Positions 28,888-61,866 of a DNA stretch of 64,000 nt are shown here, piece after piece. Position 1 is the stretch's first letter, and each line of letters starts with the position of its first letter. A model generated the notes under the pieces. It searched no databases. It saw only the letters and a program-made list of their open reading frames with translations, and was not told where the DNA came from. Made by a program: the position numbers and the translations under genes. The stretch is taken from the sequence record NC_048054.1; one strand, written 5' to 3'.

Positions 28888-28892
28888 TTGCC

Positions 28893-29246: not shown

Positions 29247-29273
29247 AAAGAGCAACCGATAAGAGATACGACA

Positions 29274-29984: not shown

Positions 29985-29985
29985 T

Positions 29986-32115: not shown

Positions 32116-32125
32116 GGGTCGCTCT

Positions 32126-32230: not shown

Positions 32231-32263
32231 TTCAATCGGACAAGGAAGTCCAGGAGATTTAAA

Positions 32264-32827: not shown

Positions 32828-32828
32828 A

Positions 32829-33405: not shown

Positions 33406-33463
33406 TCGGCATTCGGTGTGTGGCACAAACGTGACTACACCCTCTACCTAAAAGGTATGTACT

Positions 33464-44390: not shown

Positions 44391-44855
44391 TTATAGCGCT
44401 AAACCTATACCGATAGCTGCTGCAATGCGCGTCAGCCACAATTGAAAATCGGCAGACTTCTGATCTTCAATACGTGCCTTGCGCTCTGCCGCTAAATCAT
44501 CGGATAGTCCGTTCGCCCTCACCTCTTCGGCTTGAGCCAAACGCAGTAGTTTGTTGCGTTCATCAATCGTCAGGTTCAACACATCGAGTAACTTGTTTCG
44601 TTCTTCGGTGCGCGTCTTGCCTGACTCATACAAATTGATCAAATCAACCATTCCCTTGTTGTCGAGCACTGCAACCTTTTTGTCGTCTACAACTTTGACA
44701 ACGACTTGAGGCTTGGCAGGAACGGCTTCCTTTTCCCACTCAACACGATTGATCTGCTGAATGTCTTGCATGGTTGTTTTCTTGGTTGGTTCGATGCCAG
44801 ACAACGAACTACAACCAGTCACTAGCAAGCACAGGAGTAACGTGATTATTTTCAT
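44391..44855 (-). CDS. Spanin-like lipoprotein (o-spanin or u-spanin architecture)
   Basis: Lipobox LVTG-C, coiled-coil body, hydrophobic C-terminus LWLTRIAAAIGIGLAL. Confidence 0.65.
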   Translation of the reverse strand: MKIITLLLCLLVTGCSSLSGIEPTKKTTMQDIQQINRVEWEKEAVPAKPQVVVKVVDDKKVAVLDNKGMVDLINLYESGKTRTEERNKLLDVLNLTIDERNKLLRLAQAEEVRANGLSDDLAAERKARIEDQKSADFQLWLTRIAAAIGIGLAL

Positions 44856-45148
44856 AGCTTATTGTACCTGTCCACAAGCTCGTCCATGCTGTCTTCTTTG
44901 GTCGGAGGCTTAACATCAGTCTCAGGCTTCCGCGTGTTCAGTTCTTTCACAGCATCGTTAACAGTCTTGCTGTCTTGGACTTGGTTCTCGATTGCTGCTT
45001 CACGCGTATTGTCAGCGGCTTTCTGTTCACCTGTGGTAGTTGAAGGGCTTGTCTTAGGACGACGGAACAACAACGCCGTAACGACAAGCACAATAACAGA
45101 TGCGAAAACCTTCCAGTATTTTCTCACGATCTCAATAGCCTTAGACAT
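44852..45148 (-). CDS. i-spanin-like membrane protein
   Basis: N-terminal TM VFASVIVLVVTALLF, helical periplasmic part, overlaps lipoprotein gene. Confidence 0.55.
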   Translation of the reverse strand: MSKAIEIVRKYWKVFASVIVLVVTALLFRRPKTSPSTTTGEQKAADNTREAAIENQVQDSKTVNDAVKELNTRKPETDVKPPTKEDSMDELVDRYNKL

Positions 45149-45162
45149 AATCACGCACTCCA

Positions 45163-45471
45163 CTATTCGGCTTTGTCTTTGTCCTGCTCCTGAGCTTTGG
45201 TGGTCTGCATGTTGACAAGGTTCTCAACTGTGAACGCCAAAGAGAAGTAGGTAAGATGGTCTGTCTGGCCGTTCATCAGTAAACCAATGAACATACCTGT
45301 AGACACAAACACTGCGGCGACGGAGGAGATTGGGTTCAGTGTCCAATACTCTTTCCAGTTTAAGCCTTCTCGCTTAGTCTTGACCACATAGTTCATCAAG
45401 ACGCCGCCAACATATGAAAGAAAGAAGGCTACGATTTGAATCGTTGGCATTTGTGATAATACATCACCCAT
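45163..45471 (-). CDS. Holin-like membrane protein
   Basis: 102 aa, 2-3 hydrophobic segments, charged C-terminus, upstream of the spanin-like genes. Confidence 0.45.
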   Translation of the reverse strand: MGDVLSQMPTIQIVAFFLSYVGGVLMNYVVKTKREGLNWKEYWTLNPISSVAAVFVSTGMFIGLLMNGQTDHLTYFSLAFTVENLVNMQTTKAQEQDKDKAE

Positions 45472-45492: not shown

Positions 45493-45520
45493 AAAAAGAA
45501 AGGGCAGCCGAAGCCGCCCT
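45493..45520 (-). terminator. Rho-independent terminator
   Basis: Minus strand AGGGCGGC-TTCG-GCTGCCCT-TTCTTTTT. Confidence 0.75.
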
Positions 45521-45526
45521 TATCGA

Positions 45527-45766
45527 TCAAAGTTGCTCAGAAGTAATCTGACCATCTTGATACAGTTCACGCTTACGCGCTTTCCACGAAGAGGAAAGTT
45601 CAGAGAAGAACTCCCTCAAACGATCATCGTCCAGTTCAAAGGGTTGCTGTACGCCATACTTCTCGCACATACCTTTGACCATATCGGCGTATTCTTGCTG
45701 GAGCATTGATTTCTCCGCGCTTACGCTGATATACTGCTTGGCTGACAGAGCTACTGTTAGTTGCAT
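45527..45766 (-). CDS. Small hypothetical protein
   Basis: EYADMVKGMCEKYGVQQPFELDDDRLREFFSEL; own upstream TAATTT and downstream terminator. Confidence 0.55.
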   Translation of the reverse strand: MQLTVALSAKQYISVSAEKSMLQQEYADMVKGMCEKYGVQQPFELDDDRLREFFSELSSSWKARKRELYQDGQITSEQL

Positions 45767-45801: not shown

Positions 45802-46401
45802 TCAAGCGAATTTCAAAACGAGGTCGTTAATGATAACAGCTTTCGACTGGTCAGTTGGCGTGGTGTTGTTTGCATATACCTTACCACCAAGCAGCTTCAA
45901 GTCTGCGTTTGAGTTTTCGTCACCAACACTGCACACTGTAAGGAATGCTGCGCCAGCATCGTTGCTGCCTGTTTGCAGGTTAACAGTGTTTGAGTACGCA
46001 CCGATAACGATACACCATGTAGGGAAAGCATCTTTCAGGAAGTAGCTCGCACGGTAATCGTTATAGGTTGCATTCAGACGCATGTTCATCGCAGAAGACA
46101 GAGGAACGATAACGTTATTCGCCATCTGAGTAACTGTGGGCTTGTTACCCGTCACACCACCAACGTAGTCTGCGACGCGAGCAGTAAACAAAGGGCCTGC
46201 TCGCGTATACGCTGCGTTGCCACCAGCCAACTGCGTACCCTCAGCAAGCAGCGACTGAACTTCTGCTTTGGTTGGCATTGTGCCTGTGTAAAACAGAACA
46301 GACACGGTAGTGGTTGTGAACGCTGTTGGTGAGGCATTACCAACTAAGTTGATAAGCGCGTTTCGCATCATGGCATTAGCGGTTGCTGGAAGCATCTTCA
46401 T
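45802..46401 (-). CDS. Virion/fibre paralog, short type
   Basis: LFYTGTMP...CSVGDENSNADLKLLGG shared with neighbours. Confidence 0.6.
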   Translation of the reverse strand: MKMLPATANAMMRNALINLVGNASPTAFTTTTVSVLFYTGTMPTKAEVQSLLAEGTQLAGGNAAYTRAGPLFTARVADYVGGVTGNKPTVTQMANNVIVPLSSAMNMRLNATYNDYRASYFLKDAFPTWCIVIGAYSNTVNLQTGSNDAGAAFLTVCSVGDENSNADLKLLGGKVYANNTTPTDQSKAVIINDLVLKFA

Positions 46402-47303
46402 TATACATTCCCCAAGAAGTTATCAGAGATGCGGATAGTGAAGTCAGACACCGCAAGAGTTCCATACTGACCTATAGACGGTGTACCGAGTACGATGTCC
46501 GTACCTACGTCCAGCACAAGACCGTAGTAGTCTTCTGGCCCAGCACCTAAATAAGGCTGAGTTGTTGAAGGAACTGACGGAAGCAGAGGGACAAGCACCG
46601 CGTGAGTGAATGCAGCAACAACGAAGTCACTGCTTTTCTCTGCATACGGAACAAACATGATTTGGCTGGTGGAGGACGTACCATTCATGTTGATTCGCAA
46701 TTTACGCGCTGTGATATCGACTTCATTCATACCAAGAGCAACTACGATGCGCGTCCATACCAGAGTCGTTGGGTCCTGATACTCAAGTCGAACGTTACCC
46801 GCGTTTATGCCGTTGGTAGCGATCATGAATGAGCGGAAACGCAGAGTACGTCCGTAGTCATACTCCATCATATCATTCGCATCCCACGACTGAGCAATAG
46901 GCAGCGTAATGTCTGAGCAAGAACACACGTTAGCCATTACCTGTTGTGGCGTTTTAGACCAACCAATAGACGGTGTATAGCGCGAGTATTCAGGGAACAC
47001 TGCGTATGTCTGCACAGACTGTTTAGCTACAGGGTCGAATGCAACACGTCCTGGACCGTAACCGCCTATAGGCATCAGGCTTCTGGCCTTGCTGTACTGA
47101 CGACACAGAATACCGTTAGCATCTGCGGTCTGTGTTTGGTACTTCAACTCAACGGCTGCACGAGAAGAAGCCACAAGATCAGTGAACGCTTTCGGTACGT
47201 TGTTGCTGCTTCCGTTTCGGAAGAATGCCGCCCAGCCACTGCTACCTGTCGTACCAACTGTTTGCAGTAGCTGATACAGCGCTTGTTTTTCAGAGACTAA
47301 CAT
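46401..47303 (-). CDS. Virion/fibre paralog, long type with discoidin-like insert
   Basis: MEYDYGRTLRFRSF...ITARKLRI; C-terminal LDVGTDIVL. Confidence 0.55.
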   Translation of the reverse strand: MLVSEKQALYQLLQTVGTTGSSGWAAFFRNGSSNNVPKAFTDLVASSRAAVELKYQTQTADANGILCRQYSKARSLMPIGGYGPGRVAFDPVAKQSVQTYAVFPEYSRYTPSIGWSKTPQQVMANVCSCSDITLPIAQSWDANDMMEYDYGRTLRFRSFMIATNGINAGNVRLEYQDPTTLVWTRIVVALGMNEVDITARKLRINMNGTSSTSQIMFVPYAEKSSDFVVAAFTHAVLVPLLPSVPSTTQPYLGAGPEDYYGLVLDVGTDIVLGTPSIGQYGTLAVSDFTIRISDNFLGNV

Positions 47304-47312
47304 AAGGCCTCC

Positions 47313-47846
47313 TTAGAATTTAATGCGCATATCAGGAACACGCACAGGCTGACCAGCAGTAACAGTACCACCAACGATTTTAAGATCGGCCGCAGAGTTT
47401 TCGTCACCAACAGTACCGATAATGCAATTGTACAGGTTTGTACCCTGCACGAAGCTGGCCCAAGCATCTGCGCTTATCCCAGCCGAGCATTGACGCAACA
47501 TAAACCACGTAGGTGTTCCAGACGTTGCGATAGTGAACAGGTTAGACTGGGCACTTAACGGCAGATTGAACACGTTGTTGTCGAAGTCCATAGTTGGAAC
47601 GAACGCGCCGAGAGAAACGTTACCCAAGAAATTCGTCTGTGTTGCGAACGCAGCGATAAGAGCTGCCGACCATGAGGTCATCGTGTTGGTCGTACCCAAC
47701 AGCGTCTGCAATTGATCATCAGTTGGAGGGGTACCAGAGAACAAAGCAACGTGGGTGGTGCCTGACGTAACTGAGCTGCCAGGCGGCATACGATAAGCGA
47801 GAGCAATTTGGGCCTGGAGCGTGTTGTATGCTTTGGAGACGCGCAT
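47313..47846 (-). CDS. Virion/fibre paralog, short type
   Basis: ALFSGTPP...GTPTWF...GTVGDENSAADLKIVGG. Confidence 0.6.
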   Translation of the reverse strand: MRVSKAYNTLQAQIALAYRMPPGSSVTSGTTHVALFSGTPPTDDQLQTLLGTTNTMTSWSAALIAAFATQTNFLGNVSLGAFVPTMDFDNNVFNLPLSAQSNLFTIATSGTPTWFMLRQCSAGISADAWASFVQGTNLYNCIIGTVGDENSAADLKIVGGTVTAGQPVRVPDMRIKF

Positions 47847-47847
47847 A

Positions 47848-48903
47848 TTAGTATACCTCAGTTGCGACAGGTTTATAGGTTACAGTGAACGAGCTAACAG
47901 CTTGCTCCTGCGCAGGGTAAACAGTGGCGTCGTTTAACACGAGGTCAAAGTTTGCAGCCTGTTTCAAATCATCCGTAATAGTCAGGCCATAGTGACCGAA
48001 GTGGCGTCCATATGCTACTGTGCTGAGGCCGTTAGACATGGCCACTGAGCCCCATACGGTGGAGTAGATAACAGGCATGATCACTGCATGTTGAATCTTC
48101 GCCAGAGTACGAGGAGACGTGCCAGAAGCATAGTCACCATAGAAGTGCAGAATAAACGGACCCAGCCCAGTAGAGAATGGATTGGTTGCTGCTTTAGAAA
48201 CGATACGCCAGCGACGACCTTGAACTGTGGCAGGAAGCTGGAAATACTTCTCAGATTGAGCAGTGGTGACGGATAAGTTCGTGTTGATGTTCGTCACGTC
48301 AACCCAAGAACTGCCCTGCTGCACTTGCAAGAAGATAAGGTTTCCTGCCGGGCCACTGAACAAGTTGTTTGCCGGTATCATACAGATTGAGGCCAAGCTG
48401 TTTACTACTACCTCAGCACCGAAATCATATTCAACAAGAGTCCATGAGCCATCTGCGTTGACAGTCTTAACTGGCGGTACTGCCGAGTTTGTTGATATAC
48501 ACGGCCCAATGTATGCCGCTGTAGTGGATGCAGTACGATGCGCCAGAATAGTGAAGAACAACATATCAAGCTGTTGGCTGTTGAGGGACAAGTTAGCCAC
48601 GAGGTCTTGATAGACTGCGCTGTATGATGCGAACGTCACTTTGGGCAGAACGCGCTTACCACGATAACCCTGCACGGTAGTCCAGGCAGGAGCTGGAGAT
48701 ACTCGGTAACCAGAGACAGCAGTAGGCGTCAGTTGCTGCTGGGAGACACCGATGTTGTTTTGCAGAAAAGCACGACCACTCACCATGTTATTCAACACAG
48801 TCTGGAGATCATAGTTCAGTGTAGTCGGAAGATTCCCTTCCATGAAAGCGCCAAACACAGCCTGAGGTGTGTTCTGATAGAGAGGTACAATTTTCATATA
48901 CAT
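47848..48903 (-). CDS. Virion/fibre paralog, long type with discoidin-like insert
   Basis: WTLVEYDFGAEV...LPATVQGRRWRI...PRTLAKIQH; clear paralog of 49485-50561; start may be 48897. Confidence 0.6.
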   Translation of the reverse strand: MYMKIVPLYQNTPQAVFGAFMEGNLPTTLNYDLQTVLNNMVSGRAFLQNNIGVSQQQLTPTAVSGYRVSPAPAWTTVQGYRGKRVLPKVTFASYSAVYQDLVANLSLNSQQLDMLFFTILAHRTASTTAAYIGPCISTNSAVPPVKTVNADGSWTLVEYDFGAEVVVNSLASICMIPANNLFSGPAGNLIFLQVQQGSSWVDVTNINTNLSVTTAQSEKYFQLPATVQGRRWRIVSKAATNPFSTGLGPFILHFYGDYASGTSPRTLAKIQHAVIMPVIYSTVWGSVAMSNGLSTVAYGRHFGHYGLTITDDLKQAANFDLVLNDATVYPAQEQAVSSFTVTYKPVATEVY

Positions 48904-48934
48904 GCCCTTGGTTTAAAGACAGTTCAAATTAATG

Positions 48935-48958
48935 ACGTGGCAGCCGAAGCCACCACGT
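48935..48958 (-). promoter_or_regulatory. cUUCGg stem-loop without U-tract, followed by TAATTT
   Basis: ACGTGGTGGC-TTCG-GCTGCCACGT; TAATTT at 48926-48931. Confidence 0.45.
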
Positions 48959-48963
48959 AGATA

Positions 48964-49488
48964 TCACAGCTGGATTGTCAGATCGAGGAAGCGATACGCT
49001 TGACCTGTTTTAATCTGACCTCCGATGAACTGGAGTTCGGCATCAGAGCCTTGATCACCGACGGAACCTATCCAGAAGGGACCTGTTAGCATGGCACTGT
49101 ATGCAAAGCCTGCCCAGTTATTCGATGCGTTTGCAGGTAGAATACGTGCAACGTAGAATGTAGGCGTACCGTCAGCAACACCAGTAAGAGTAGCGGCCTG
49201 CCCAGCAAGAGGCAGTGTTACTGTACGTGCCTGTACGTTAACGACAGGTGTGATCGCAGCAGAGGCCAGTACACCAAGAAAATCAGCAGACACAAGCCCC
49301 AGGTTTGCACGCACGGTGTTCCAGTTCAACAGGCTATTGACAGCGCCAGGAGGTAATACATCCAGCGCCTTGCTTATCTTGGGTGCAGTACCTTTGAACA
49401 GACCAATATGCAGAGAGTTGGCTACGATTGATGTGGCTGGAAAGGCGGCATTCATCTGAGCCAAAGAAACGGCTTTATTGCTAATCAT
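48964..49488 (-). CDS. Virion/fibre paralog, short type
   Basis: GLFKGTAP...GTPTFY...GSVGDQGSDAELQFIGG. Confidence 0.6.
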   Translation of the reverse strand: MISNKAVSLAQMNAAFPATSIVANSLHIGLFKGTAPKISKALDVLPPGAVNSLLNWNTVRANLGLVSADFLGVLASAAITPVVNVQARTVTLPLAGQAATLTGVADGTPTFYVARILPANASNNWAGFAYSAMLTGPFWIGSVGDQGSDAELQFIGGQIKTGQAYRFLDLTIQL

Positions 49489-50561
49489 ACGCCCCTCCCT
49501 ACGAGTGCGTCTTGCTTCACACGGAACGTAGGCACAGGCGCTTCACCGAATGCTGTGTTATACGTTGTGTCCAACATAACTATATCGTTACTGGCAGACA
49601 GTTTAACATCGTCAGTGATAGTGAAGTGCGTCATGCTGAAATATCTGCCAGCAACCGTAGCCTCTTGGGCGGGCCAGTTGAAGTGCCACTGAGTGCTGTT
49701 TGCGTAACTGGCACTGGCGATCAGATTGAGCACAGACATGTGCTTATACTTACCTAACGTGCGAGGCTTAACACCTGTATAGTTGCCGTAGAACTGCAAA
49801 CTAAATGGATAGTGGCCAAGCGTTGTCCATGGCCATGATACTGATTTATTGATCAGCCTAAACTTCTGAGCTTTGACAGATGCTGGAAGTGTGTATGCAA
49901 CAGGCGACCAGTTGGTTACTGTGCGAACGTTAGCGTAGCAGTCCACTGCATCCACCCATTGCCCGTTGGCATAGGCTTGCAGTACGGTACCTTGTGTACC
50001 GAGTACCATAAGTGAGTTCACGGCAGCACCCACTGAAACACCAACGAGTCCTTTCAGCTCCATCTCGGCACCGAAATCATACTCGGCGATCAGCCAATTA
50101 CCGGCTTCTGTCAGATTGTACTGAGGACTCAAGTACAGGCTGGTAGTCGTTGAGAATTGACTTGCCGCGTTACCCATCTTGTGCGCAAGGATAGTCGTTG
50201 CCACACTCTCGTTATACTTACCGACAGTTGCAGCAAAACGGTTGTCGATAGCAGGCAGACGTACCTTAGGGATGATACGAGTTAATGCGTTGATCGCCGC
50301 GCCATATCCGAACGCGGCATTAATCTCCACCCAAGCTGGATAGAAGTTATTACCAACAAAGGTCGAGGCTGACACTGGAGTGTACTGCCAACGAAACGGC
50401 GCTGTACTCATTGGCGTCTTTTGAAGCAAACGAATCGTAATAGCATCATTGAACGTGCTATGAATATCACGCTCGCCATTATCGGGCACGTCTGTATCGT
50501 ACAGCAGGCCAAGCGAGAACATAGAAGCTACGTTCACCGCCTGATACGGAAAGAGTTCCAT
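49485..50561 (-). CDS. Virion/fibre paralog, long type with discoidin-like insert
   Basis: WLIAEYDFGAEM...LPASVKAQKFRLI...PRTLGKYKH. Confidence 0.6.
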   Translation of the reverse strand: MELFPYQAVNVASMFSLGLLYDTDVPDNGERDIHSTFNDAITIRLLQKTPMSTAPFRWQYTPVSASTFVGNNFYPAWVEINAAFGYGAAINALTRIIPKVRLPAIDNRFAATVGKYNESVATTILAHKMGNAASQFSTTTSLYLSPQYNLTEAGNWLIAEYDFGAEMELKGLVGVSVGAAVNSLMVLGTQGTVLQAYANGQWVDAVDCYANVRTVTNWSPVAYTLPASVKAQKFRLINKSVSWPWTTLGHYPFSLQFYGNYTGVKPRTLGKYKHMSVLNLIASASYANSTQWHFNWPAQEATVAGRYFSMTHFTITDDVKLSASNDIVMLDTTYNTAFGEAPVPTFRVKQDALVGRGV

Positions 50562-50570
50562 AATGCGTCC

Positions 50571-51149
50571 TTAGCTGAATGTGATGTTGTTGATATTGAC
50601 AGTGCCATTCAGGTTGAACGTACCATCACCGTTATCAGTCAGAGGAACACCCATAGAGATTAAATCTTGTGGTGTGAACTCAACCAAAGATGAAACAGAA
50701 GCTGTATTGTTGTTTAGTGTAGACGAGCTATTGCTCAACAACAAGTACATACGGTTGAACGCCTTAGCATATGCGAAGCGGCCGAGCGCAGTATACAGAT
50801 CGAACATGCGCTTACCGTTCCCAAGATTGACAATGCGTATTGTACCGGACGAGGCGAAGGTTGATTCCATTACGCAGCCCGGAACGTTGGCAGTCAGATA
50901 CGTGCGCAACGAAGTCAGACTAAATGGTGCCTGTGCTTGGTTGTTCCACACTGAATCTGGGATGGTATCACCCGCAGAGAAAACAAGGGCGGCAGTGACC
51001 TCAGCAGAAATTGGAATACCACCAGATTGCAAATTGCCGGAGTTATAGCCAACAAAAGATGCAGGCTGACACGGGTTTTCAACAGTAGGGTTGGCCGTTG
51101 AACCAAGCGAATCACCGCGCATGTTGAGCATTGCTTTAGAGATATACAT
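50571..51149 (-). CDS. Putative virion protein in the paralog array
   Basis: 192 aa, coupled; weak similarity to short-type paralogs. Confidence 0.5.
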   Translation of the reverse strand: MYISKAMLNMRGDSLGSTANPTVENPCQPASFVGYNSGNLQSGGIPISAEVTAALVFSAGDTIPDSVWNNQAQAPFSLTSLRTYLTANVPGCVMESTFASSGTIRIVNLGNGKRMFDLYTALGRFAYAKAFNRMYLLLSNSSSTLNNNTASVSSLVEFTPQDLISMGVPLTDNGDGTFNLNGTVNINNITFS

Positions 51150-52051
51150 CAGCTACTCCTTTGCGTGAAGCGCAGTTTAGGACAGTACATCAACGTCTTC
51201 TGACTTGGGATAACCTGATCCACCAGCTTGAATGGCCCCTGATTACCTACAGCGCCAGCAGTGTACATGATGCTGTCTGAGTAGTCGATATCCCCATGCG
51301 TGAACGTGTTACAGTGTGCAAGCGCGGCCCACGTAGGAGAAGTTACGGCAACAGAAGACGGCACATCAACTGAGCTGAGTAGCACTCGCATGGCAGACAC
51401 TGCGGTTGTGCTCGACACTTTATAGCGATAACGTTTAGAAGCAACAGGAGCCGAGAGAGCCAGACAGGTAGAATCACCCGTGACAGCGCTCGCACTTCCT
51501 AACGTTATTTCTTGGCCCTGATCGTTAACGGCTACCAAGGTCAATGCAGAAGCAGGCGTTGTGTTGTACTTAATGTGCGTCACAGTGACGGCCGTATCAA
51601 ACTCGAAGTCGATATCTGATATAGCCGTACGCGCAGCAGGACTGTTTCCGCTACCTGCACCCATCAGCACTGTGATGTTACGATCAGTAAGGCCTGAACT
51701 AATGATACGATGAGGCACAAGTTGAGATACCACAATAGCAGGAGTGCCAACGGTCCCATAGTACGATACCCCTTTAGGGATGTACTGAGATTGTAAGGCA
51801 AGTGCAATCACGTTGCCGTTCTCAATTCCAGTGATAGGGTTTCGCACAATGCCGATAGCTTGGTTATACATATCAGCAAGTGACTTATTGTTGAAGGCCG
51901 CTTCGAAGCCTTCTTTGGACGTAGGCAGTTTGCCACTAAACGCAAAGATATTCCAGCCAGCACCTACGTTTGGATCGTTGAGTAGTGCTGCCGTGTTTGC
52001 ATTCGTGCCTACAACTGCTTGCGCCATGATACGTGTGTTAATGATCTTCAT
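51149..52051 (-). CDS. Virion/fibre paralog, long type
   Basis: IFAFSGKLPTS...FEFDTAVTV...SKRYRY...SPTWAAL...GAVG. Confidence 0.55.
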   Translation of the reverse strand: MKIINTRIMAQAVVGTNANTAALLNDPNVGAGWNIFAFSGKLPTSKEGFEAAFNNKSLADMYNQAIGIVRNPITGIENGNVIALALQSQYIPKGVSYYGTVGTPAIVVSQLVPHRIISSGLTDRNITVLMGAGSGNSPAARTAISDIDFEFDTAVTVTHIKYNTTPASALTLVAVNDQGQEITLGSASAVTGDSTCLALSAPVASKRYRYKVSSTTAVSAMRVLLSSVDVPSSVAVTSPTWAALAHCNTFTHGDIDYSDSIMYTAGAVGNQGPFKLVDQVIPSQKTLMYCPKLRFTQRSS

Positions 52052-52506
52052 TAGCTCACCACCGGTGCTACAGATTTGTTATTCGCTTTCGTATCAGACA
52101 GGTCAAGTGCACCAACCGTAACACGGAACACAATGTTATCAAACAGAGGTTCAATAGTCTGGTCAGTCACGAATGCACCAGTCGCCAGAGGTACGTCAAT
52201 ACGTCCTGGCGTGATGTTGGAGTTGAACGTGCGTGCCGTAAACTTAGACTGCACCTGACCAACGAGTGCTGCAACAAGCACAAGCTGATCTGCACTTGTT
52301 ATTTGCTGATTGAGAATCTGCGTCCAACGATACGCAGGAATCGTCTGAGACAGAACATCAGCCACACGTTCCTGAGGAATGTACGTGGCTTTCTCGTTCG
52401 TCGTAGGCTTAGACGGCTGCGACGCCGTACTGATTTCAAGCTGCGACATAACGAACACGAAGTCAGCAAAGAGATCAGGATCATACGCAATGACAGGTAC
52501 AAACAT
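52051..52506 (-). CDS. Putative virion protein in the paralog array
   Basis: 151 aa, coupled; RVTVGALDL. Confidence 0.5.
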   Translation of the reverse strand: MFVPVIAYDPDLFADFVFVMSQLEISTASQPSKPTTNEKATYIPQERVADVLSQTIPAYRWTQILNQQITSADQLVLVAALVGQVQSKFTARTFNSNITPGRIDVPLATGAFVTDQTIEPLFDNIVFRVTVGALDLSDTKANNKSVAPVVS

Positions 52507-52507
52507 G

Positions 52508-53596
52508 TTATGCTCCTTGTCTCACGCTGTAGTTATTGATGATAGGCGTATACGATGCGTTGCCACCACCATAGCCACCAGCAACTTGCTGTATTGTTGC
52601 TGAGGCTGGTTTGGTAACGGCGTATGTGAACTGATCAACCTGAGTACCGTTGAAGTACACAGTATGCTTGTTGGTAGTCGCATCATACACATATTTGATA
52701 TGAACGATAGAACCTGACCACAGAGCAGAGTACGCAGAGATAGGACGAGATACTTTGGCCGTAGCAGAGCCACCGTTAGTGTTGTTCCATATACACAGGC
52801 CACGTTCGTTTGAGCGGTCGAATGCAATTGCAAAACGATCAGAAGTGCCTGTGCCTATCCTGAGAAGTGCCCACTCTGCATAATCAGCATTGCCTGACTG
52901 GTGGTAGTCACACTCAATCGTAAAGGACTTGCTTGGGTCAAACCCAGGAACCGATGGTGTGGAGATTACACCAGCAGTGCCCAGGTCAATACCTTGACCG
53001 TCAGTAGCGACTTTGGCACCAGTCGATGTGTATGCTAGGCCAACATAGTCAGTGAATGCGCCTGTGTTGAAACTACCAATATCGAAAGCAGTAGCCTCAG
53101 AGCCAGTTAGCCAAGTAGCGCTTGCTGTCTCAGTCCACATCTGCGTCAGGCTGATAGAGAACGCCAGAATGGTGATCTGGGTCTTATATCCGTTCGGGCC
53201 GTACTTGATGTTGAGGTCAGGATAAAGCAACGTAACGTCAGTGCCTACCGTCAGGCAGATAGGCAGAATGCCACCCAAGATTAAGTGGGTAGGTACACCC
53301 TCAGCCAGAGCCGTAAGCAAGCAATCAGAAATAGACAGCTTGTTACGGTCGATAGTGCGAACGCAGTTGGTGCCTTTGGCCAACACAGTACAGATACCGG
53401 TAGACGCTGCGAGTGACGCATCGAACACATAGCCTGCACCAGTCTGCGCCTGAAAGTTAAGGCACTTGTTAAGGTCTGCTTCGGTGTAGCCCGCATTTAG
53501 CTTTACCAGATAGCAGGACTTATCATCTGCCGTTGACTGAGCAAACAAGCGTGTCAACTGAGGCACAGCAGAGTTAGCAAACAGCTTATAATTCAT
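52508..53596 (-). CDS. Virion protein with C-terminal LamG/ConA-like domain
   Basis: ATG 53596; N-half GVPTHLI...LTVGTDVTL; C-half KSFTIECDY...VHIKYVYD...HTVYFNG. Confidence 0.6.
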   Translation of the reverse strand: MNYKLFANSAVPQLTRLFAQSTADDKSCYLVKLNAGYTEADLNKCLNFQAQTGAGYVFDASLAASTGICTVLAKGTNCVRTIDRNKLSISDCLLTALAEGVPTHLILGGILPICLTVGTDVTLLYPDLNIKYGPNGYKTQITILAFSISLTQMWTETASATWLTGSEATAFDIGSFNTGAFTDYVGLAYTSTGAKVATDGQGIDLGTAGVISTPSVPGFDPSKSFTIECDYHQSGNADYAEWALLRIGTGTSDRFAIAFDRSNERGLCIWNNTNGGSATAKVSRPISAYSALWSGSIVHIKYVYDATTNKHTVYFNGTQVDQFTYAVTKPASATIQQVAGGYGGGNASYTPIINNYSVRQGA

Positions 53597-53597
53597 G

Positions 53598-54554
53598 TTA
53601 TACCTCTGTGGACAAACGAAGCTGGGCGACAGAAGCGAACTCACCAGGACCGAGTGTCACGTTTAACAACTCGATAGGTTTGCCACTGCCAATAGCACCA
53701 ACTTCACAGGCAAAGTAAGTCGGGATGTAGTTGCCGTTAGCAAGAGCACCGTAGTTGGTGTCCTGAATAACAACCAGTGCTGTCTTAATCGTTCTGTATG
53801 CTGCGTTACGTCCAACATCGGATGCGGTAACAGGCAGAACGCGACGAGTACCTGACGTCTGGATGAAGCGATAGCGGTTCGACTGAGGCACGGCAGTAGC
53901 AATCAAGTTGCTTTCCTGATTGGCAGCAATCGACCAAGCGACAGCAGTACCGACAGCACCAGAGCCATCAATAGGAGCAATGGTACCAGCAGCGGCTGTG
54001 CTTGTATCGCCAACGTCAGACAGAACAGCGTCGATAGTAACAGCGAAGTCATACGTCAGATCAACAGACGACAGGTGAATGCCTGGCATCAGTGCGTCGT
54101 GAGGAATACCTGCATAGTCCCACGGACGATAGCCAGCAGGACCAATGCCCCACAGAGCTTTGTTGCCAGCATCGTTGCTGGTGTTGTACGCACTTTGAAT
54201 CTGAGAAGATCCAGCACCGTTGTAACCCACAGGACGCGCTTTAGATGGATAGTGAATGGTTGCACCGTTCTTGATTTCGTACACATGACCAGAACGAGCT
54301 TTCCATCCTTCCTGTTGGTCCATAAGAGGTAACAGGCCTTCTGTGGTCGGGCGCAGTGTGAGTCGAGTAGCAGCGACAGCGTTATCAAACAGGTTACGCA
54401 TGTCCAGAAGATGCTGCGAGAAGTTACCCTGATCTGCCATCTCAGTGTCGAAGAAGAACACGTTAACGGTCTGGCCGTTAGCTGCATTCGACGCCCAACC
54501 AGAACCTAAGTTAAGCACACTGAAAGGCAAAAGGTTATGTCCTAAGATACGCAT
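53598..54554 (-). CDS. Virion/fibre paralog, long type
   Basis: LTYDFAVTIDAV...QSNRYRF...CEVGAIGSGKPIEL. Confidence 0.55.
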   Translation of the reverse strand: MRILGHNLLPFSVLNLGSGWASNAANGQTVNVFFFDTEMADQGNFSQHLLDMRNLFDNAVAATRLTLRPTTEGLLPLMDQQEGWKARSGHVYEIKNGATIHYPSKARPVGYNGAGSSQIQSAYNTSNDAGNKALWGIGPAGYRPWDYAGIPHDALMPGIHLSSVDLTYDFAVTIDAVLSDVGDTSTAAAGTIAPIDGSGAVGTAVAWSIAANQESNLIATAVPQSNRYRFIQTSGTRRVLPVTASDVGRNAAYRTIKTALVVIQDTNYGALANGNYIPTYFACEVGAIGSGKPIELLNVTLGPGEFASVAQLRLSTEV

Positions 54555-55051
54555 TAGAACTCCTTAGAGTCTTTAACAACGGTCGCAAGGAACTTACCGT
54601 TGCGTAGGTTGGATGCAGACAGAATCAGGTCAGCACCAGAGCCAGCAGCACCGATAGTCAGAATCAGGAAGCCACCGTAAGGCGTGCTTGCAATATCTTT
54701 GTTGAAGACAATCACGTTGTACGCGCTCAACAAGTCTGTGATAGTGCCCGCGAATGTACCCTGCAGCGTAGCGCTCAGGCGGAACTTATATTTGTTGTCT
54801 TGACCATGAATCCAGCGCACAGGGTTAACGGTAACAGAAGTCAGGTCGAGCACCGCAGTAGCACCAATAGCAGTTTGCACTGTAGTGCCGTCGGCAACAA
54901 CAATGTTTGCAGGGTCTGGTACTTTAGCTAGGCAGATTGTTTTCTGCATGTTTGATAGGCCATACTTCAACGGCGGATCAGTTACAGGGCGTTTGCCTGC
55001 ATCTGGAATCACAATGCCGTTGGCGACCAAAGGGAATGAAACTATTTCCAT
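54554..55051 (-). CDS. Virion/fibre paralog, short type
   Basis: LTIGAAGSGADLIL. Confidence 0.55.
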   Translation of the reverse strand: MEIVSFPLVANGIVIPDAGKRPVTDPPLKYGLSNMQKTICLAKVPDPANIVVADGTTVQTAIGATAVLDLTSVTVNPVRWIHGQDNKYKFRLSATLQGTFAGTITDLLSAYNVIVFNKDIASTPYGGFLILTIGAAGSGADLILSASNLRNGKFLATVVKDSKEF

Positions 55052-55118: not shown

Positions 55119-56042
55119 TCACAGCGCCCAACGATCTTTATCGTGCAACTGTATCTGGTTTATTGTCCCTTGAATGGAGGCACGCGGTGCACCTGCAGGA
55201 AATGAGAAGTCTTCATCAGCTTTTATATGGATGACAACCAGCCTGTCTGGAAACGATACGCCGATAATACCCTTTGCAAGACTAATACTGGACTCGCCAG
55301 TTAGAGATGCACTTGCCGTTGGAACAAGAGGTGTGCCAGTGCTTCTGACAGGAGTGTTCCATCGGCCAGACCCATACAACTCTTTTGCCCACTCAAGTAG
55401 AACACTTGTGTTTTGAGCAAAGGACATGTCCATAAACTTGGTGACGGAGTATTCTGTCGAATCGTGCTGCGCTACCTGTTTTACCTCAGACACGCTCTGC
55501 TGGTTGGCTGCATATCTGTATCTTAGGTTGTACATTACGCCGCTAGAAGAACCGCCAAACACACGATATACACCAGCACTGAATCCAGATATATAATAAG
55601 ATGATACAGGCACAGGGTTTCCGCCAACCTGTGTTGGACAAAAGGAAGCTACGCCAGGTGTGTACGATTTGCTGCTGCTAGAAAACGTAAATGGGCTTTC
55701 GTCTGTGTCCGAAACATGATGCTGTTCGTTTCTTCCATTGCACCTGCCATTAACATTAAAACCCACAGATGTGGGAAATAGTGTTGTGGCAAATGCCTGA
55801 TATGAAGATATGTCAGGCTGTACGCCTAGGTTGGTTATGCGAGTAAGAGTTATACCTCCATTCAATGCTCCCATTAGAGGGTTGAGCGTTGCATTGTTGC
55901 CCTGTATTGTGTCAACTGTCGCGCGAGCGTTCCGCAGCAATGACAACATCTGGTCTGGACTTGTGATTGTCGTGTCTATTTGATCATCGAACAACCACGA
56001 ATATAGAGCCAGATTCTTTGTTAAGGGAAGAACCAATTGCAT
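55119..56042 (-). CDS. Putative virion protein, paralog triplet member
   Basis: MQLVLP...FDD...LLRNAR...GN..TLNPLMG shared N-terminus. Confidence 0.55.
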   Translation of the reverse strand: MQLVLPLTKNLALYSWLFDDQIDTTITSPDQMLSLLRNARATVDTIQGNNATLNPLMGALNGGITLTRITNLGVQPDISSYQAFATTLFPTSVGFNVNGRCNGRNEQHHVSDTDESPFTFSSSSKSYTPGVASFCPTQVGGNPVPVSSYYISGFSAGVYRVFGGSSSGVMYNLRYRYAANQQSVSEVKQVAQHDSTEYSVTKFMDMSFAQNTSVLLEWAKELYGSGRWNTPVRSTGTPLVPTASASLTGESSISLAKGIIGVSFPDRLVVIHIKADEDFSFPAGAPRASIQGTINQIQLHDKDRWAL

Positions 56043-56051
56043 GTTAGTGCC

Positions 56052-57002
56052 TCACAATCGTATTGGGTCTGTCGAGTACATCTCAGGCTGCGGCTGGATA
56101 TTGAATGAAGTTGTGTTGCCTACACCCAATGTCTTAACGCCAAAATCTTCTTCGGTGTAAAGCACTGCGCGAATGCGCGTACCTTCCCAAATGAACAGCG
56201 CGAACTTATCTATGGTCTGCGGTGGCTCTGCATAACCACTGTTTCCGTATTGGTTTGAGCAGCATACATACCTTCCTGAATCATACAAGTTTCGACGCAC
56301 TGGCGTTGTTGCTCGCCAGTAGCCGCCGTCAGAGAATGCCTCCAAATAGGCTCCCATACTAAACGCCATCAAATCAGTCTGGTCCGTTGCCCAAGAGGAG
56401 TAGTTTGTGCCCGTGAAGGTGTATGACCATGAGTGTGCAGACTTAGTGACCGTAGTTGCACTCGTTGACGTAAACAGTCTACGCCTGTGCATATAAGCAT
56501 CACCCGTCTGTCTACTGGCAGATGATACAGTGACTTGCGTATCAGGGAATGAAGCCAGGAATGCTGTAGGTAGCGTTGTTCCTTGAAGTGACTTCGGTAC
56601 TAATGCGAAAGGCGTATATGCAAAGTTCGTTGTATTTCCCGTGAATGGTGTGTTCGAGTTGTAGTTATCAACAAAAGCCATCTGGCTGGATTTACGTCCG
56701 TAGCCGTCCTTAAGACCTGTAACCAATAATGTTCGAATGACTCCATCATCCGATGTGAAGTCAGGCGGCTCGGCAACCATGGTTAACTTCGAGTAATAGA
56801 GTCGTGCTTGTGTGTTGTACGCAGCGACACCCATCATTGGCTGACAGGTTATCGTGTTTCCAGAGATACTTGCAACGGAGCTTCTGCTATTACGAATTAA
56901 ATCACGTAGCTCGGATATGCTTTTGAATTGTATCTGCTGGTTCGAGTCGAAGAAGAATCCGTATTTACGAACATCATCCTGCTTCGGCAGAACAAGCAAC
57001 AT
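56052..57002 (-). CDS. Putative virion protein, paralog triplet member
   Basis: MLLVLP...FDS...LIRNSR...GNTITCQPMMG. Confidence 0.55.
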   Translation of the reverse strand: MLLVLPKQDDVRKYGFFFDSNQQIQFKSISELRDLIRNSRSSVASISGNTITCQPMMGVAAYNTQARLYYSKLTMVAEPPDFTSDDGVIRTLLVTGLKDGYGRKSSQMAFVDNYNSNTPFTGNTTNFAYTPFALVPKSLQGTTLPTAFLASFPDTQVTVSSASRQTGDAYMHRRRLFTSTSATTVTKSAHSWSYTFTGTNYSSWATDQTDLMAFSMGAYLEAFSDGGYWRATTPVRRNLYDSGRYVCCSNQYGNSGYAEPPQTIDKFALFIWEGTRIRAVLYTEEDFGVKTLGVGNTTSFNIQPQPEMYSTDPIRL

Positions 57003-57011
57003 ATTGTGTCC

Positions 57012-58055
57012 TTACACTTTGAACAGTGTCTTTGTCCCAAACGGGTTCTCAAATTCGATGTTCAATACAGCAACATCACCAGTGGCCGCGGGTGCGGTCT
57101 GTATAATGTCCTGGCCAATTTTGGCACGAAGCATATACCCTTGACCATTGCACTTAAACATCATCATGCAAGAAGTCAGAAGCACGTCAGGCGTATTGTC
57201 TTTTCCAGTGACAGCCGTACGCATAGGGAAAGCTGCACTGTCACGCACATAACCACCGACGCCATTCGAAACAGTAGGTGCATCCCAAGCAGTAAACTGA
57301 TTAAGTCCACTACAGCTGTAGCGTTTACCAACAGGCCTAATGAATGTGATATGAGGATTAGAAGCAGGGCCACTGAGGACAGAAGGGATGCCTTGCATCG
57401 GCGAAGAGGTAGTCTGAATGTAGGAGTAAGACTGCGCTCCTGATTCTGCCCGCGTATTCAGATTAAGAGAAGCATTCATAAATCCTGCATCATAACCACT
57501 ATACGTTCCCCAGAAACTATCAACGTACCTAGAATACTGACTGCCGGTCTTAGAACTGTATGATTCAATTATGGATGATTCACGCATGTTCTCAGGAAAG
57601 ACGAGCATACAGGATGAGGGCCAATAGTAACCAGTCTCACCCGTATCTCTACTGACGCCGTTCCAGCCATTGAACACAGGATTGCCGTTAGCCCACTGCT
57701 GGCCATTTCCTGCGGCAGTGTCGTACACACAGAAGTAGCGTTCGGCCACAGCCTTATAGGTTTGCACTGCCGTGTAGCTATTGTGAGGAGCAGAGTTGCC
57801 TGAGATTAGGTTAGCACTACGCGCTGGGTAGAAGTAGTTGTCCTTAACACCGCTCATAGGGCTTAAGGTAACTTGGTCACCTTGTGTGTCAGAGCTATTT
57901 CCCCAAGCACGGACAGAAGCAATCTTAGATATGTAATGCTCCTCGTCAACGTGTGCGTCTGATATATCTGTCTGATCATCAAAGTAAAGACCTCGATGTA
58001 CAGCAAGCTTGGCAATCGCATTCGCCTTATTGTTATGGTACGTGGCATACAACAT
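57012..58055 (-). CDS. Putative virion protein, paralog triplet member
   Basis: YFDDQ...GDQVTLSPMSG. Confidence 0.55.
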   Translation of the reverse strand: MLYATYHNNKANAIAKLAVHRGLYFDDQTDISDAHVDEEHYISKIASVRAWGNSSDTQGDQVTLSPMSGVKDNYFYPARSANLISGNSAPHNSYTAVQTYKAVAERYFCVYDTAAGNGQQWANGNPVFNGWNGVSRDTGETGYYWPSSCMLVFPENMRESSIIESYSSKTGSQYSRYVDSFWGTYSGYDAGFMNASLNLNTRAESGAQSYSYIQTTSSPMQGIPSVLSGPASNPHITFIRPVGKRYSCSGLNQFTAWDAPTVSNGVGGYVRDSAAFPMRTAVTGKDNTPDVLLTSCMMMFKCNGQGYMLRAKIGQDIIQTAPAATGDVAVLNIEFENPFGTKTLFKV

Positions 58056-58064
58056 AAAAACTCC

Positions 58065-58700
58065 TTAATCTAATTCGAATGCGCTCGCAGGAGGTACGAA
58101 TGTGGTGTCGTAGCGAGAGAAGTTACTCACACGAATCTGATCCCAATAACTATTCGAGGAACCTTCGTACCCACCAACACGCAGGGGTACAGCAGACATG
58201 CCGAATCCCGGAGCGGTGTCAGTAGTAGTCATTTTAGCAACACCATCAATCCAGATAGTGTATACGTTGCCTTTGCGCGTCAACGCTAGGTGATACCAAC
58301 GGCCAACAGGAATGATCGCAGCAGCAGAAGCCATAGCGTATTGTGTGCGCGTCTGTAGATATACGTTGCCTTGATATGTCTTAAAGCAACTAGACACGCC
58401 ATCACCTTTACTCAACCACCACTGATTGCCTGTGATACTAATCGTATACACCCAGCCTTCAATAGTGAAGTCACCGCTCTCGAATGGCAAATCTGTGGTG
58501 CCGAAGTCAACATAACCGTTGTTCATCAGAAAGGATTTATCGCCAAACTTGGATTGTGCTGTGCTCACGACTGGACTTGTCCACAGTGTCAGCTTTCTTC
58601 CAGGAACGGCGAGATCATTGAATCCGTCTGTAGCTCTCAAGAGCACACGCGTCTTGTCGCCAACATCGAAGTCATACGTCAACGCTTGGACGTAAGTCAT
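58065..58700 (-). CDS. LamG/concanavalin A-like domain virion protein
   Basis: SKFG, DFTIEGWVY, WYHLALTRKG...IWIDG, DQIRVS...RY..FVPP. Confidence 0.8.
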   Translation of the reverse strand: MTYVQALTYDFDVGDKTRVLLRATDGFNDLAVPGRKLTLWTSPVVSTAQSKFGDKSFLMNNGYVDFGTTDLPFESGDFTIEGWVYTISITGNQWWLSKGDGVSSCFKTYQGNVYLQTRTQYAMASAAAIIPVGRWYHLALTRKGNVYTIWIDGVAKMTTTDTAPGFGMSAVPLRVGGYEGSSNSYWDQIRVSNFSRYDTTFVPPASAFELD

Positions 58701-59353: not shown

Positions 59354-59575
59354 TTAGGCGATCCGCACATGTCCCGTAACTGCATACGGGAATGTTACTT
59401 TGACCGTGTTCATATCCACAACGATAACATCGAGTGGTAGCACTTGATGGAGCTTACCATCAGGCATATTCACGCAAGTTGTCACTGCGACGTAGCGGCC
59501 GAAGTTATGTGCGATCGTCCATTCGGTCGCGGGCGTCTCCTGTTCAAAGGTGCGCCCCATCGAATAGTTGATCAT
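59354..59575 (-). CDS. Small structural protein, single W.I.HN domain
   Basis: ATEWTIAHNFGRY...VTFPYAVTG. Confidence 0.55.
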   Translation of the reverse strand: MINYSMGRTFEQETPATEWTIAHNFGRYVAVTTCVNMPDGKLHQVLPLDVIVVDMNTVKVTFPYAVTGHVRIA

Positions 59576-59586
59576 GCGAATCTCCC

Positions 59587-60183
59587 TTAATACAGAATAA
59601 CAGTACCAGACTGCGCACTGTCAAACGTGATGGTGAGCTGGGTATTGCTATCATGGACGATAGACTTAGGCTGAACTTCTTTCGAGCCCTGATGGACCTG
59701 AACCGCAGGATGGTAGCCGAGGTTGTGTGTAACAACCCACACAGCTTCGTCTGTGAACGAGGCAGTGAATGCGACAGTAGGTGCAGGTAGACCGCTTTCA
59801 ATACCAGACAGCAGCACGGCAGTACCAGCAACAGGCTCAGGGAACAGCACGATTGTGGTGTTAGCGTCTTGCGCTTTGATTGAGGAAGGCATCAGCACTT
59901 CACCATTTTCATCGTAGCACTGTACGATAGGCGTTGCTGTATTCATGTTGTGGGTGATTTCCCAACGAGATGAAGCAGATGCCTGAGCATGACGGTACAT
60001 CGTCATTTGTTGAGACAATGGAACCCAAATAGGCAGGTCCAAAATCTCAACACAGAACATCAGACGCTTATCCATGAAGATTGCCATGCCCGGTTGAGGG
60101 TTATCAGGCCAATCAGTAACTTCTGCAAACTTGAAGTTCTTAATCGAGCCGAACTCTAGGTCTAAACTACCGAGGACTTTCAT
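59587..60183 (-). CDS. Structural protein with two W.I.HN domains
   Basis: RWEITHNM and VWVVTHNLG repeats. Confidence 0.6.
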   Translation of the reverse strand: MKVLGSLDLEFGSIKNFKFAEVTDWPDNPQPGMAIFMDKRLMFCVEILDLPIWVPLSQQMTMYRHAQASASSRWEITHNMNTATPIVQCYDENGEVLMPSSIKAQDANTTIVLFPEPVAGTAVLLSGIESGLPAPTVAFTASFTDEAVWVVTHNLGYHPAVQVHQGSKEVQPKSIVHDSNTQLTITFDSAQSGTVILY

Positions 60184-60201
60184 AAATCTTCTCCTGAAGG
60201 T

Positions 60202-60227
60202 AAAAAGGGCAGGCAGATGCCCACCCT
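60202..60227 (-). terminator. Rho-independent terminator
   Basis: Minus strand AGGGTGGGC-ATCT-GCCTGCCCT-TTTT. Confidence 0.7.
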
Positions 60228-60240
60228 CTTAGTATGCTAC

Positions 60241-61866
60241 TTACGCAGCTGGTTCAACGTAGGCGTTAGTACCAGTTACGAATGCGATTGCGACTTTCTT
60301 CGCAGTAGCCAGCTCAACACGCAGACTGTTTGCGTCGATGAACACAACTTCATCAGGGATGATCTGATAGCCAGTGTCGTCAACAACTGTGACAGTACCA
60401 TACTTCACACCAGCGTTGTGAGTGAAGGTGTGGGCAGTTGCGGCAGCATCACCGCCAGCAGTTTTGTCGTACTGGTACAGTTTAGCAGCAGCGCCACCAG
60501 CAGAACCTGCGATAGCGTCGTCAACGTACTTCTTGCTGACAGCAGAAGCATCGGTCAGAGCGCCAGTACCAGTCAGGTTGATGTGGTCAACGTCACCGCC
60601 GTTTGCGTCGATGAAGCCACCGGCAGTTTTAACCGCAGCAACGTCAACAGCGATTTTGCTGTTAGTGGTGTCCTGTTTCAGGCCATCACCAAGTGCAGCG
60701 GCAGCAATCTGGTCGTAACCAACGCCACCATCAGCAATTGCCAGACCATCAACAGAACGTGCCAGAGTAGCGCCGTCCAGTTTAACGCGAGTGCTGCCAG
60801 CGTTATCTTCCAGGCCGCCAGCAGAGTCCAGCTTCGCAGTTACAGCGTTAGAGGTGATCTGAATACCAGCACCAACTTTCACGTTAACAACGTTGCCAGA
60901 TTTCTCCAGACCGTCGCCTGCGTTGAACTCAGAAGCACCGCCGAACGTGGTCCACACAGTGCCGTCGAAACGACGATACTCTTTGATGGACTTAATCCAG
61001 GTAACAGCACCACCAGCTTCGCTGTCAGTTGGGTCGAACACGATAACGAACGCAGTGCCGTTATAGCGAACGATCATGTTGTCTACCAGACCAGTGATAG
61101 AACCGAAGTTCGGGTTGATCTGGTCAGCAGCCAGAATCAGGTACTGTTTACCAGCTACCAGTTCTGGGTCGAGAGTGCCGTCCTGCTGAATAGCGTCAGA
61201 GTCTTGCAGCCAGTCGATACCCGCGATAGCGTTGTCGATATCGATCTTACGAGCAGCATCGTTCGCGTTAGCTGGAGCAGCCAGGTTAGAAACGGTGTTA
61301 CCGTTCGCGTCGAGGTCGCCAGTCAGTTGGCCGTTAGCGGCGTTCAGCTTACCAGCCAGAGCAGTTTCGTTCGCGTTAGCTTTGTTGCTAACAGCGGTGA
61401 TCTGAGACTGGATGTTAGAGCTTGCGCCAGACAGATAGCCTAGCTCGGCAGCGGTTACGTTTGAGGTTTGCAGTTCGTTATCTGCACCAGCAACTACTAC
61501 ACCGTTTTCAGTCAGGCCGGTCAGCTTGTCCTGCTTGGTAGCAACAACGGTTTCAACGTGTTTCTTAGAAACAGCCGCGTTGTCGCCAGATGCAGACTGG
61601 TCTGGACCAGACAGCAGCAGGTCCGCAGTCATCGGCACAGTACCGTCAGCCAGGATAGCGCCCTCTACAGAACCGCCACCGCCCAGCTCTTTGATTGCAG
61701 TACCGTCGAAGTATTTGTACTTACCTTCGGTGCTGTTGTACCACATACGTGCAGTTTGAGCCTGGACCAGATCACCTACAACTGGATCAGCGGAAAGAAC
61801 CTCTGGACGGAAGTTCTTAATCTGAGCACTGAGCATCAGTTCAATATTACCAGTACGCATTGTCAT
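60241..61866 (-). CDS. Tail fibre-like structural protein
   Basis: 541 aa; AVSKKHVE / AARKIDID / AVSKKYVD motifs, AGDGL repeats, C-terminal HTFTHN domain. Confidence 0.65.
   Translation of the reverse strand: MTMRTGNIELMLSAQIKNFRPEVLSADPVVGDLVQAQTARMWYNSTEGKYKYFDGTAIKELGGGGSVEGAILADGTVPMTADLLLSGPDQSASGDNAAVSKKHVETVVATKQDKLTGLTENGVVVAGADNELQTSNVTAAELGYLSGASSNIQSQITAVSNKANANETALAGKLNAANGQLTGDLDANGNTVSNLAAPANANDAARKIDIDNAIAGIDWLQDSDAIQQDGTLDPELVAGKQYLILAADQINPNFGSITGLVDNMIVRYNGTAFVIVFDPTDSEAGGAVTWIKSIKEYRRFDGTVWTTFGGASEFNAGDGLEKSGNVVNVKVGAGIQITSNAVTAKLDSAGGLEDNAGSTRVKLDGATLARSVDGLAIADGGVGYDQIAAAALGDGLKQDTTNSKIAVDVAAVKTAGGFIDANGGDVDHINLTGTGALTDASAVSKKYVDDAIAGSAGGAAAKLYQYDKTAGGDAAATAHTFTHNAGVKYGTVTVVDDTGYQIIPDEVVFIDANSLRVELATAKKVAIAFVTGTNAYVEPAA

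Follow-up and report, generated by a model that had tools for sequence, protein, structure and literature searches.

What do twelve tandem genes at the distal end of a jumbo-phage virion module encode? The question arises in a 64,000-nucleotide (nt) stretch of record NC_048054.1, referred to below as the window, which comprises the first 64 kb of the genome of Dickeya phage vB_DsoM_AD1 (AD1; MH460463.1, 261,658 bp, genus Alexandravirus). AD1 is a 'hairy' jumbo myovirus, and its host Dickeya is a potato pathogen. The array, AD1_087 to AD1_076 (hereafter g087 to g076), occupies positions 45802–55051 of the minus strand, with 100% identity and the same coordinates in MH460463.1; eleven of its genes are annotated as 'hypothetical protein' and one, g087, as 'putative membrane protein'. 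The twelve genes and lengths listed in an initial annotation, made from the letters of the window, were borne out: from g087 to g076 the open reading frames (ORFs) encode 165, 318, 362, 151, 300, 192, 358, 174, 351, 177, 300 and 199 amino acids (aa), with alternative lengths of 378 aa for g085, from an upstream GTG, and of 349 aa (versus 351) for g079 as annotated. Short (S) and long (L) genes are mixed, as had been described, but they do not alternate strictly, the order in the direction of transcription being S-L-L-S-L-S-L-S-L-S-L-S. We consider it moderately probable that the array supplies accessory host-recognition parts at the tail tip, in the form of a greatly expanded, domain-decorated garland/tail-fibre network.

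The short proteins and the garland family

The S model, an AlphaFold2 prediction for g078 (177 aa; 47313–47846; this and all features located below are on the minus strand), was made with 39 homologues and has a predicted local distance difference test score (pLDDT) of 89.9 and a predicted template modelling score (pTM) of 0.85. It has a single outstanding match in the PDB, 9rkv_A (Foldseek E 1.6e-4, template modelling (TM) scores 0.50/0.61), the next match being at E 0.25. VIA-align superposes the model on this chain over 131 of 139 residues (Z 9.2, root mean square deviation 4.3), and the next chains reach Z 5.1–5.2. A phmmer search of the genes of Agrobacterium phage 7-7-1 against PDB sequences identifies 9rkv_A as 7-7-1_000103 (E 9e-89), a 'structural protein' of 141 aa whose gene comes immediately after 000102, which encodes the 587-aa long tail fibre; the paralogue of 000103 is 7-7-1_000105. 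In cryogenic electron microscopy of the 7-7-1 virion, the garland rings the tail-fibre tips, and its 36 homodimeric proteins contact both fibre types (PMC12796354). The garland of phage Milano is built from gp125 and gp127, whose genes flank gp126 and adjoin the receptor-binding protein genes; unexplained blobs in that structure might be gp126 (PMC10811340).

The relationship extends to sequence. A hidden Markov model (HMM) search with the short-family profile against 1.84 billion cluster representatives returned 157 representatives at E ≤ 1e-3, nearly all of 160–210 aa. In HHalign, a deep S profile of 143 sequences matches 7-7-1 000103 and 000105 at 95.8% (E 7.6e-9) over 55 columns that hold the C-terminal motif given by the initial annotation, and the shallow g078 profile matches the garland at 57%. 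HMM searches of PDB sequences with the 39-sequence S profile or the g083 profile gave no match. The AD1 short proteins thus resemble 7-7-1 000103/000105 and Milano gp125/gp127 both in fold and in profile homology around the motif W...G.VG...S.A(D)L. The genomic setting is also alike: in each case tandem paralogous genes for small proteins, with another gene set between them, lie beside the tail-fibre or receptor-binding genes of a myovirus. They differ in number and size, AD1 having five or six garland-type modules of 165–199 aa as against two of about 140 aa in 7-7-1 and Milano, and in being interleaved with lectin-domain proteins of 300–360 aa, one module apparently being fused to a LamG domain.

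Three proteins, g076 (199 aa; 45802–46401), g078 and g080 (174 aa; 48964–49488), form a clear short family of garland homologues. They share phrog_17152, are joined by BLASTP (g080 with g078, E 7e-22; g076 with g078, E 1.5e-9) and by HHalign (98–100%). The first gene of the array, g087 (165 aa; 54554–55051), encodes a divergent member of the family as judged by profile comparison (deep S profile against g087 orthologues, 91.5%, E 8.8e-7), and its annotation as a membrane protein is probably wrong. Foldseek searches of BFVD with the S model, in which matches were assigned to genes by organism and length only, retrieved orthologues of g080 and g076 together with four proteins of phage NCTB size; the model superposes on the Alexandra orthologue of g080 with a TM of 0.83. 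Putative orthologues of g082 (Yoloswag, 186 aa; JA13, 197 aa) were matched with prob 1.00 and 0.99 at a TM of about 0.45, proteins with the length expected at the g085 position (JA13, 339 aa; Yoloswag, 351 aa) with prob 0.99 and 0.66, and a putative g083 orthologue (Yoloswag, 297 aa) with prob 0.54. On the basis of these models, g082 (192 aa; 50571–51149) and the N-terminal domain of g085 probably have a garland-like fold.

A 175-kb contig (ENA ERZ26696836) contains a 1617-aa ORF whose N terminus matches the short-family profile (E 7e-11); the surrounding gene calls are very sparse and tiny, perhaps because the contig is from a phage and was translated with an unsuitable genetic code.

Lectin-like folds and paralogy across the array

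The long protein g081 (358 aa; 49485–50561) was modelled by AlphaFold2 with 27 homologues (pLDDT 85.2, pTM 0.87). Residues ~82–265 form a galactose-binding-domain-like jelly roll (Foldseek E 8e-6 with the CASPR2 discoidin domain), and the N- and C-terminal remainder forms a separate β domain. VIA-align gives Z-scores of 10.8 with an F-lectin (3cqo), 10.2 with neuropilin b1b2, 9.9 with the CASPR2 discoidin domain and discoidin I, and 9.3–9.5 with CBM32 modules, the superpositions spanning 126–143 residues. By our own reading, the motifs (E)YDFG and A.K(F)R(L) correspond to the first and late strands of this fold. Unlike the discoidin (F5/8 type C), F-type lectin and CBM32 domains, the g081 jelly roll is inserted in a scaffold formed from both ends of the chain. 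The discoidin-like insert proposed for the long members is therefore right at fold level in g081. Column entropy along the g081 orthologues showed no hypervariable patch in the lectin domain.

By homology to g081, a jelly roll is expected in its paralogue g079 (349 aa; 47848–48897) and in the more divergent g077 (300 aa; 46401–47303; motif EYDYG...ARKLRI), which together make up group A. Motifs suggest that the two members of group B, g083 (300 aa; 51149–52051; DIDFE...SKRYRY) and g086 (318 aa; 53598–54554; the degenerate SVDLT...NRYRF), probably contain one as well. The remaining long protein, g085 (362 aa; 52508–53596), has a different architecture, with an N-terminal domain of ~150 aa followed by a LamG/ConA-like domain (~206–346). 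Its residues 206–346 match Pfam Laminin_G_3 (PF13385; E 7.7e-5), the sole match in a scan of ten array proteins (g087–g078). The 23.3-bit score lies below the 27.6-bit cut-off, so that the match behind the single LamG member foreseen in the array is a weak one; in relatives the segment behaves as a mobile domain (see below).

The array had been taken to consist of about twelve paralogues. All-versus-all BLASTP links three sets only: g076/g078/g080, g079/g081 (E 2e-31 for g079 against g081) and, weakly, g077/g079. PHROGs agree, with g079 and g081 in phrog_22190 and each array protein outside these two groups in a clade-specific PHROG of its own without an assigned function. Profiles built for each family from orthologues in ten related phages reach further in HHalign. 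They join g079 with g081 (100%), g077 with g079 (92.6%) and with g081 (68.5%), both over the C-terminal half, and g083 with g086 (93.9%, E 1.6e-7) over 130 central residues; all-versus-all comparison of these profiles gave no links beyond g076/g078/g080, g077/g079/g081 and g083/g086. The deep S profile adds g087, as described above, and gives weak signals with g082 (colinear over 140 columns, P 5e-4) and with the C terminus of g086 (P 6e-4). Between the merged profiles of the two long groups there is a colinear alignment of 251 columns (P 7e-4), and the g083 and g086 profiles align with the g081 family over the N-terminal 40–60 residues only (P 0.003–0.01). In profile alignments the long proteins form two groups, g077/g079/g081 and g083/g086, with only a weak link between them.

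Clear paralogues thus stand in the array beside probable distant ones and at least one orphan, and twelve paralogues cannot be demonstrated. The orphan, g084 (151 aa; 52051–52506), is a conserved array member with its own PHROG; its model is of low confidence, and the ESM Atlas gave no usable lead for it or for g087. Searches of the rest of the AD1 genome found no further copies of the S or L family. The scaffold motifs said to be shared by most members, (L/F)F.G..P at the N terminus and (T/S)VG...S.ADL.L at the C terminus, occur in degenerate form in g087, g086, g081 and g079, but in strict form in two or three proteins: the N-terminal motif in g078 and g080, with g076 one residue off, and the C-terminal motif in g076 and g078. 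For the related proposal that a long protein is a short scaffold with an insert, the support consists of weak colinear signals and a few low-probability structure matches, since the L alignment without its jelly roll gave no significant match to the S profile (P 0.19).

A proposed tail-tip network weighed against other roles

We infer a virion role for the array because the short proteins are homologous to a protein that has been resolved in a virion, and the array occupies the far end of the virion module, in keeping with the earlier label of 'virion genes'. The homology, folds, synteny and domain shuffling observed in these phages suggest the following arrangement. The short proteins g076, g078, g080 and g087, and probably g082 and the N-terminal domain of g085, are garland homologues that would belong to a network at the tail tip. 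The globular long proteins g077, g079 and g081, and probably g083 and g086, would bear jelly rolls of the discoidin/F-lectin/CBM32 type, with a LamG-type domain taking their place in g085. Together the array products would put many weak glycan-binding sites, for lipopolysaccharide, capsule or exopolysaccharide, around the baseplate, and these could aid reversible adsorption or orientation ahead of contraction.

Several observations weigh against this arrangement. No Pfam lectin model (PF00754 or relatives) matched at E ≤ 0.1 in the ten array proteins scanned, and for this reason the lectin assignment of the long proteins is a fold-level resemblance only, drawn from predicted models. The ties of the long proteins to the S scaffold are weak (P 6e-4 to 0.2), the garland match being confined to the S family, and g084 found no match in HHalign, whether in the all-versus-all comparison or with the deep S profile. 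The presence of array products in the virion is something we infer for every phage of the clade, as we do their location, oligomer partners and glycan binding. The function of the garland itself has not been established for 7-7-1 (PMC12796354) or for Milano (PMC10811340).

The garland fold also bears on a second possible role, that of baseplate-proximal connectors of the T4 gp8/A511 gp105 type, which would run from the wedge to the fibre N termini and use the jelly-roll and LamG domains for protein–protein contacts. The Milano authors liken the garland fold to T4 gp8 and A511 gp105, which link the tail-fibre network to the wedge and are able to assemble into chains like beads on a string (PMC10811340). 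These dimeric baseplate accessory proteins organise fibres, T4 gp8 (334 aa) is as large as the long proteins, and the many AD1 fibre genes (AD1_092–108) specify products that need anchoring. T4 gp8, A511 gp105 and phi812 arm chains are indeed among the matches of the S model (6hhk_A, Z 4.6; 5hx2_B, Z 4.5; 1n7z_A, Z 4.3; phi812 chains, Z 4.0–4.4; 124–133 residues for T4 gp8 and A511 gp105), but scores of 4.0–4.6 lie in the chance range, whereas the garland protein reaches Z 9.2 with sequence support in addition. T4 gp8 and A511 gp105 sit near fibre N termini and are encoded among baseplate genes, and they show no sequence signal with the array; the array, in the manner of garland genes, comes after the fibre genes rather than among the wedge genes. 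We regard a connector role as improbable. Slightly less probable still is that the products act outside the virion, as fibre-assembly chaperones or as lectin-like proteins that work within the infected cell or at its surface, where they might exclude superinfecting phages or modify the cell surface at lysis. Such a role would fit the neighbouring lysis-like cassette and the small, acidic, chaperone-like g075 that trails the array. Against it, the short proteins are homologous to a protein resolved in a virion; reading of the array sequences revealed no N-terminal signal sequence or lipobox, and between the array and the lysis genes there is a terminator. We know of no precedent for twelve chaperones.

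The initial annotation had also raised the possibility that short/long pairs are the genetic basis of the hairs of some jumbo myoviruses. In its most concrete form, the pairs would polymerise into hair-like appendages of the sheath, for example with dimers strung together like beads. Hairs occur on both AD1 and Y3 (the hairy Myoviridae include Y3, CBB and phAPEC6, and the AD1 lineage has hairs), a 2026 review assigns the hairs of Y3 to no gene, and the array is conserved in the hairy Y3/AD1/JA lineage. A profile search found no S-family match in PaBG, which carries no weight here, as the morphology of PaBG is outside the comparison. Garland and gp105-type dimers can form chains (PMC10811340), and for this reason we still give the hair reading some weight. 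It is not borne out by the models, however: those of S and L are compact and globular (pTM 0.85–0.87), with no fibrous segment and without coiled coil, β-helix or collagen repeat. In phAPEC6 the hairs arise from rings present on both sheath and capsid, whereas the nearest solved relative of the array proteins is at the baseplate (PMC12796354). Four nearby proteins, AD1_102, 106, 107 and 108, each contain one uninterrupted run of 23–34 Gly-X-Y triplets starting near residue 71–80, which by our estimate would form a triple helix of ~20–30 nm. Their genes lie at 65.6–74.2 kb of the record (25675–34244 of locus L001), 10–18 kb upstream of the array. These fibrous, collagen-like proteins are more natural hair candidates than those of the array. 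Since the models are globular and collagen-like genes are nearby, we consider hairs built from array proteins unlikely. A broader version, to which we also assign a low probability, is that chains of garland-type dimers, each with a different lectin module, form a kind of appendage not seen before, either the Y3/AD1 hairs or a multi-tiered lectin skirt at the baseplate, and that pair duplication and LamG shuffling tune which surface glycans the phage sticks to. The term 'combinatorial host-range device' is at this stage a conjecture.

Garland proteins were recognised only in 2024–2025, in two small Agrobacterium phages. The homology described here extends their family to the marine phage NCTB and to a whole lineage of jumbo phages that infect plant pathogens and enterobacteria (Erwinia, Dickeya and Yersinia). 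In that lineage garland-type genes have become five to six times as numerous and alternate with genes for lectin-fold proteins. A testable role is thereby given to twelve 'hypothetical' genes in each genome, and the relatives provide a natural variant series for garland function, with arrays of 10 or 12 genes, LamG domains that are either free or part of a larger protein, and a last short protein enlarged by an additional domain. AD1-type phages are biocontrol candidates for fire blight and soft rot, and knowledge of their host-contact genes is practically useful. The search for hair genes is redirected to the neighbouring collagen-like proteins.

Gene order, relatives and neighbouring genes

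The virion module is a minus-strand block from AD1_149 to AD1_072. Its order runs from capsid, sheath, tube and VgrG through the baseplate wedge and two very large proteins to the tail and collagen-like fibre genes, a 539-aa fibre-like protein, the g088–g090 family and g091; the array follows, downstream of the fibre genes AD1_092–108, and then a terminator and a lipoprotein gene, the distal end being succeeded by lysis genes. Eleven of twelve array junctions range from −4 nt (the start of g080 overlaps the stop of g081 by 4 nt) to +9 nt and have Shine–Dalgarno-like sequences, so that 'translationally coupled' is a fair description. Only one gap is sizeable: g080 and g079 are 66 nt apart, at the point where the two duplicated long/short pairs meet, and a stem-loop of 10 bp with a UUCG loop (48935–48958) lies in this interval. 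A scan for sigma-70 promoters found fewer sites than in shuffled sequence. The last short gene, g076, is followed by g075 (79 aa; 45527–45766; phrog_28651), which encodes an acidic, probably helical protein and belongs to the same transcription unit; in all relatives examined it comes after the last short gene, at 44–89% identity. A role as an assembly factor is a guess. A terminator-like hairpin with a T-run (45500–45521) closes the array ahead of the lysis-like genes. This hairpin and the stem-loop at 48935–48958, which has no T-run, have a common core, GGCTTCGGCTGCC, with the UUCG loop.

The array is syntenic in six phage genera and in phage NCTB, a surface-water isolate. Twelve genes are present in Y3 and Alexandra-like phages and ten, one long/short pair fewer, in Yoloswag, SNUABM_5 and JA11; SNUABM_7 and Yersinia phage fHe-Yen9-02 also have the array. 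The most conserved member is g087, with 76–98% identity in Alexandra-, Y3- and Yoloswag-type phages and 52–56% in JA11 and fHe-Yen9-02, and the least conserved genes are those at the 3′ end. Array proteins are 86–98% identical to those of the nearest Erwinia-infecting relative, as against mostly 95–100% for flanking proteins, a mild excess of divergence.

Comparison of array content between these phages shows that pair number differs and that the LamG domain is shuffled. The N-terminal domain of g085 stands alone as a 150-aa protein in fHe-Yen9-02, its LamG part stands alone as a 215-aa protein in SNUABM_7, and in JA11 the LamG part is fused to a g086 homologue. At the g076 position, a metagenomic relative (locus L025) has a 380-aa homologue with an extra domain of ~200 aa. 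Domains have been gained, lost and moved between scaffolds, and the earlier description of the array as 'modular' is therefore apt. Salmonella phage Sen-NF (PV359490; 108 kb) has an AD1-like tail-fibre module, with a g087 homologue directly after a g095-like virion protein; its coding sequences abut without intergenic bases, and the record is odd and possibly partial.

Directly past the array terminator, 44391–45471 encodes a membrane protein, a small protein and the lipoprotein g072. Besides its lipobox, g072 has a hydrophobic segment at the C terminus and shows a weak match to Rz-like spanins. The three genes are probably the lysis cassette, possibly including a unimolecular-spanin-like protein.

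On the other side of the array, g088, g089 and g090 (307, 316 and 347 aa; 55119–58055) form a second tandem paralogue family, without a PHROG or Pfam match. Its copy number varies among relatives, and SNUABM_33, the nearest of them, lacks an orthologue of g088. The annotated length of AD1_088 is 164 aa (55119–55613), but the ORF continues to 56042, and residues 1–147 of its product can be aligned with g089 (E 2e-11); the annotation looks truncated. The next gene, g091 (211 aa, 'putative structural protein'; 58065–58700), matches inner segments of PHROGs of very large virion and baseplate-wedge proteins, with E-values as low as 6e-35, and is apparently a free-standing ConA/LamG-type module, another lectin-like domain beside the array. 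Further upstream (59354–61860), a module of ~60 aa is common to g093 (73 aa), g094 (198 aa, two copies) and the C terminus of g095, the 539-aa fibre-like virion protein, as indicated by BLASTP (E 4e-5 to 5e-4) and by cross-matches between PHROGs.

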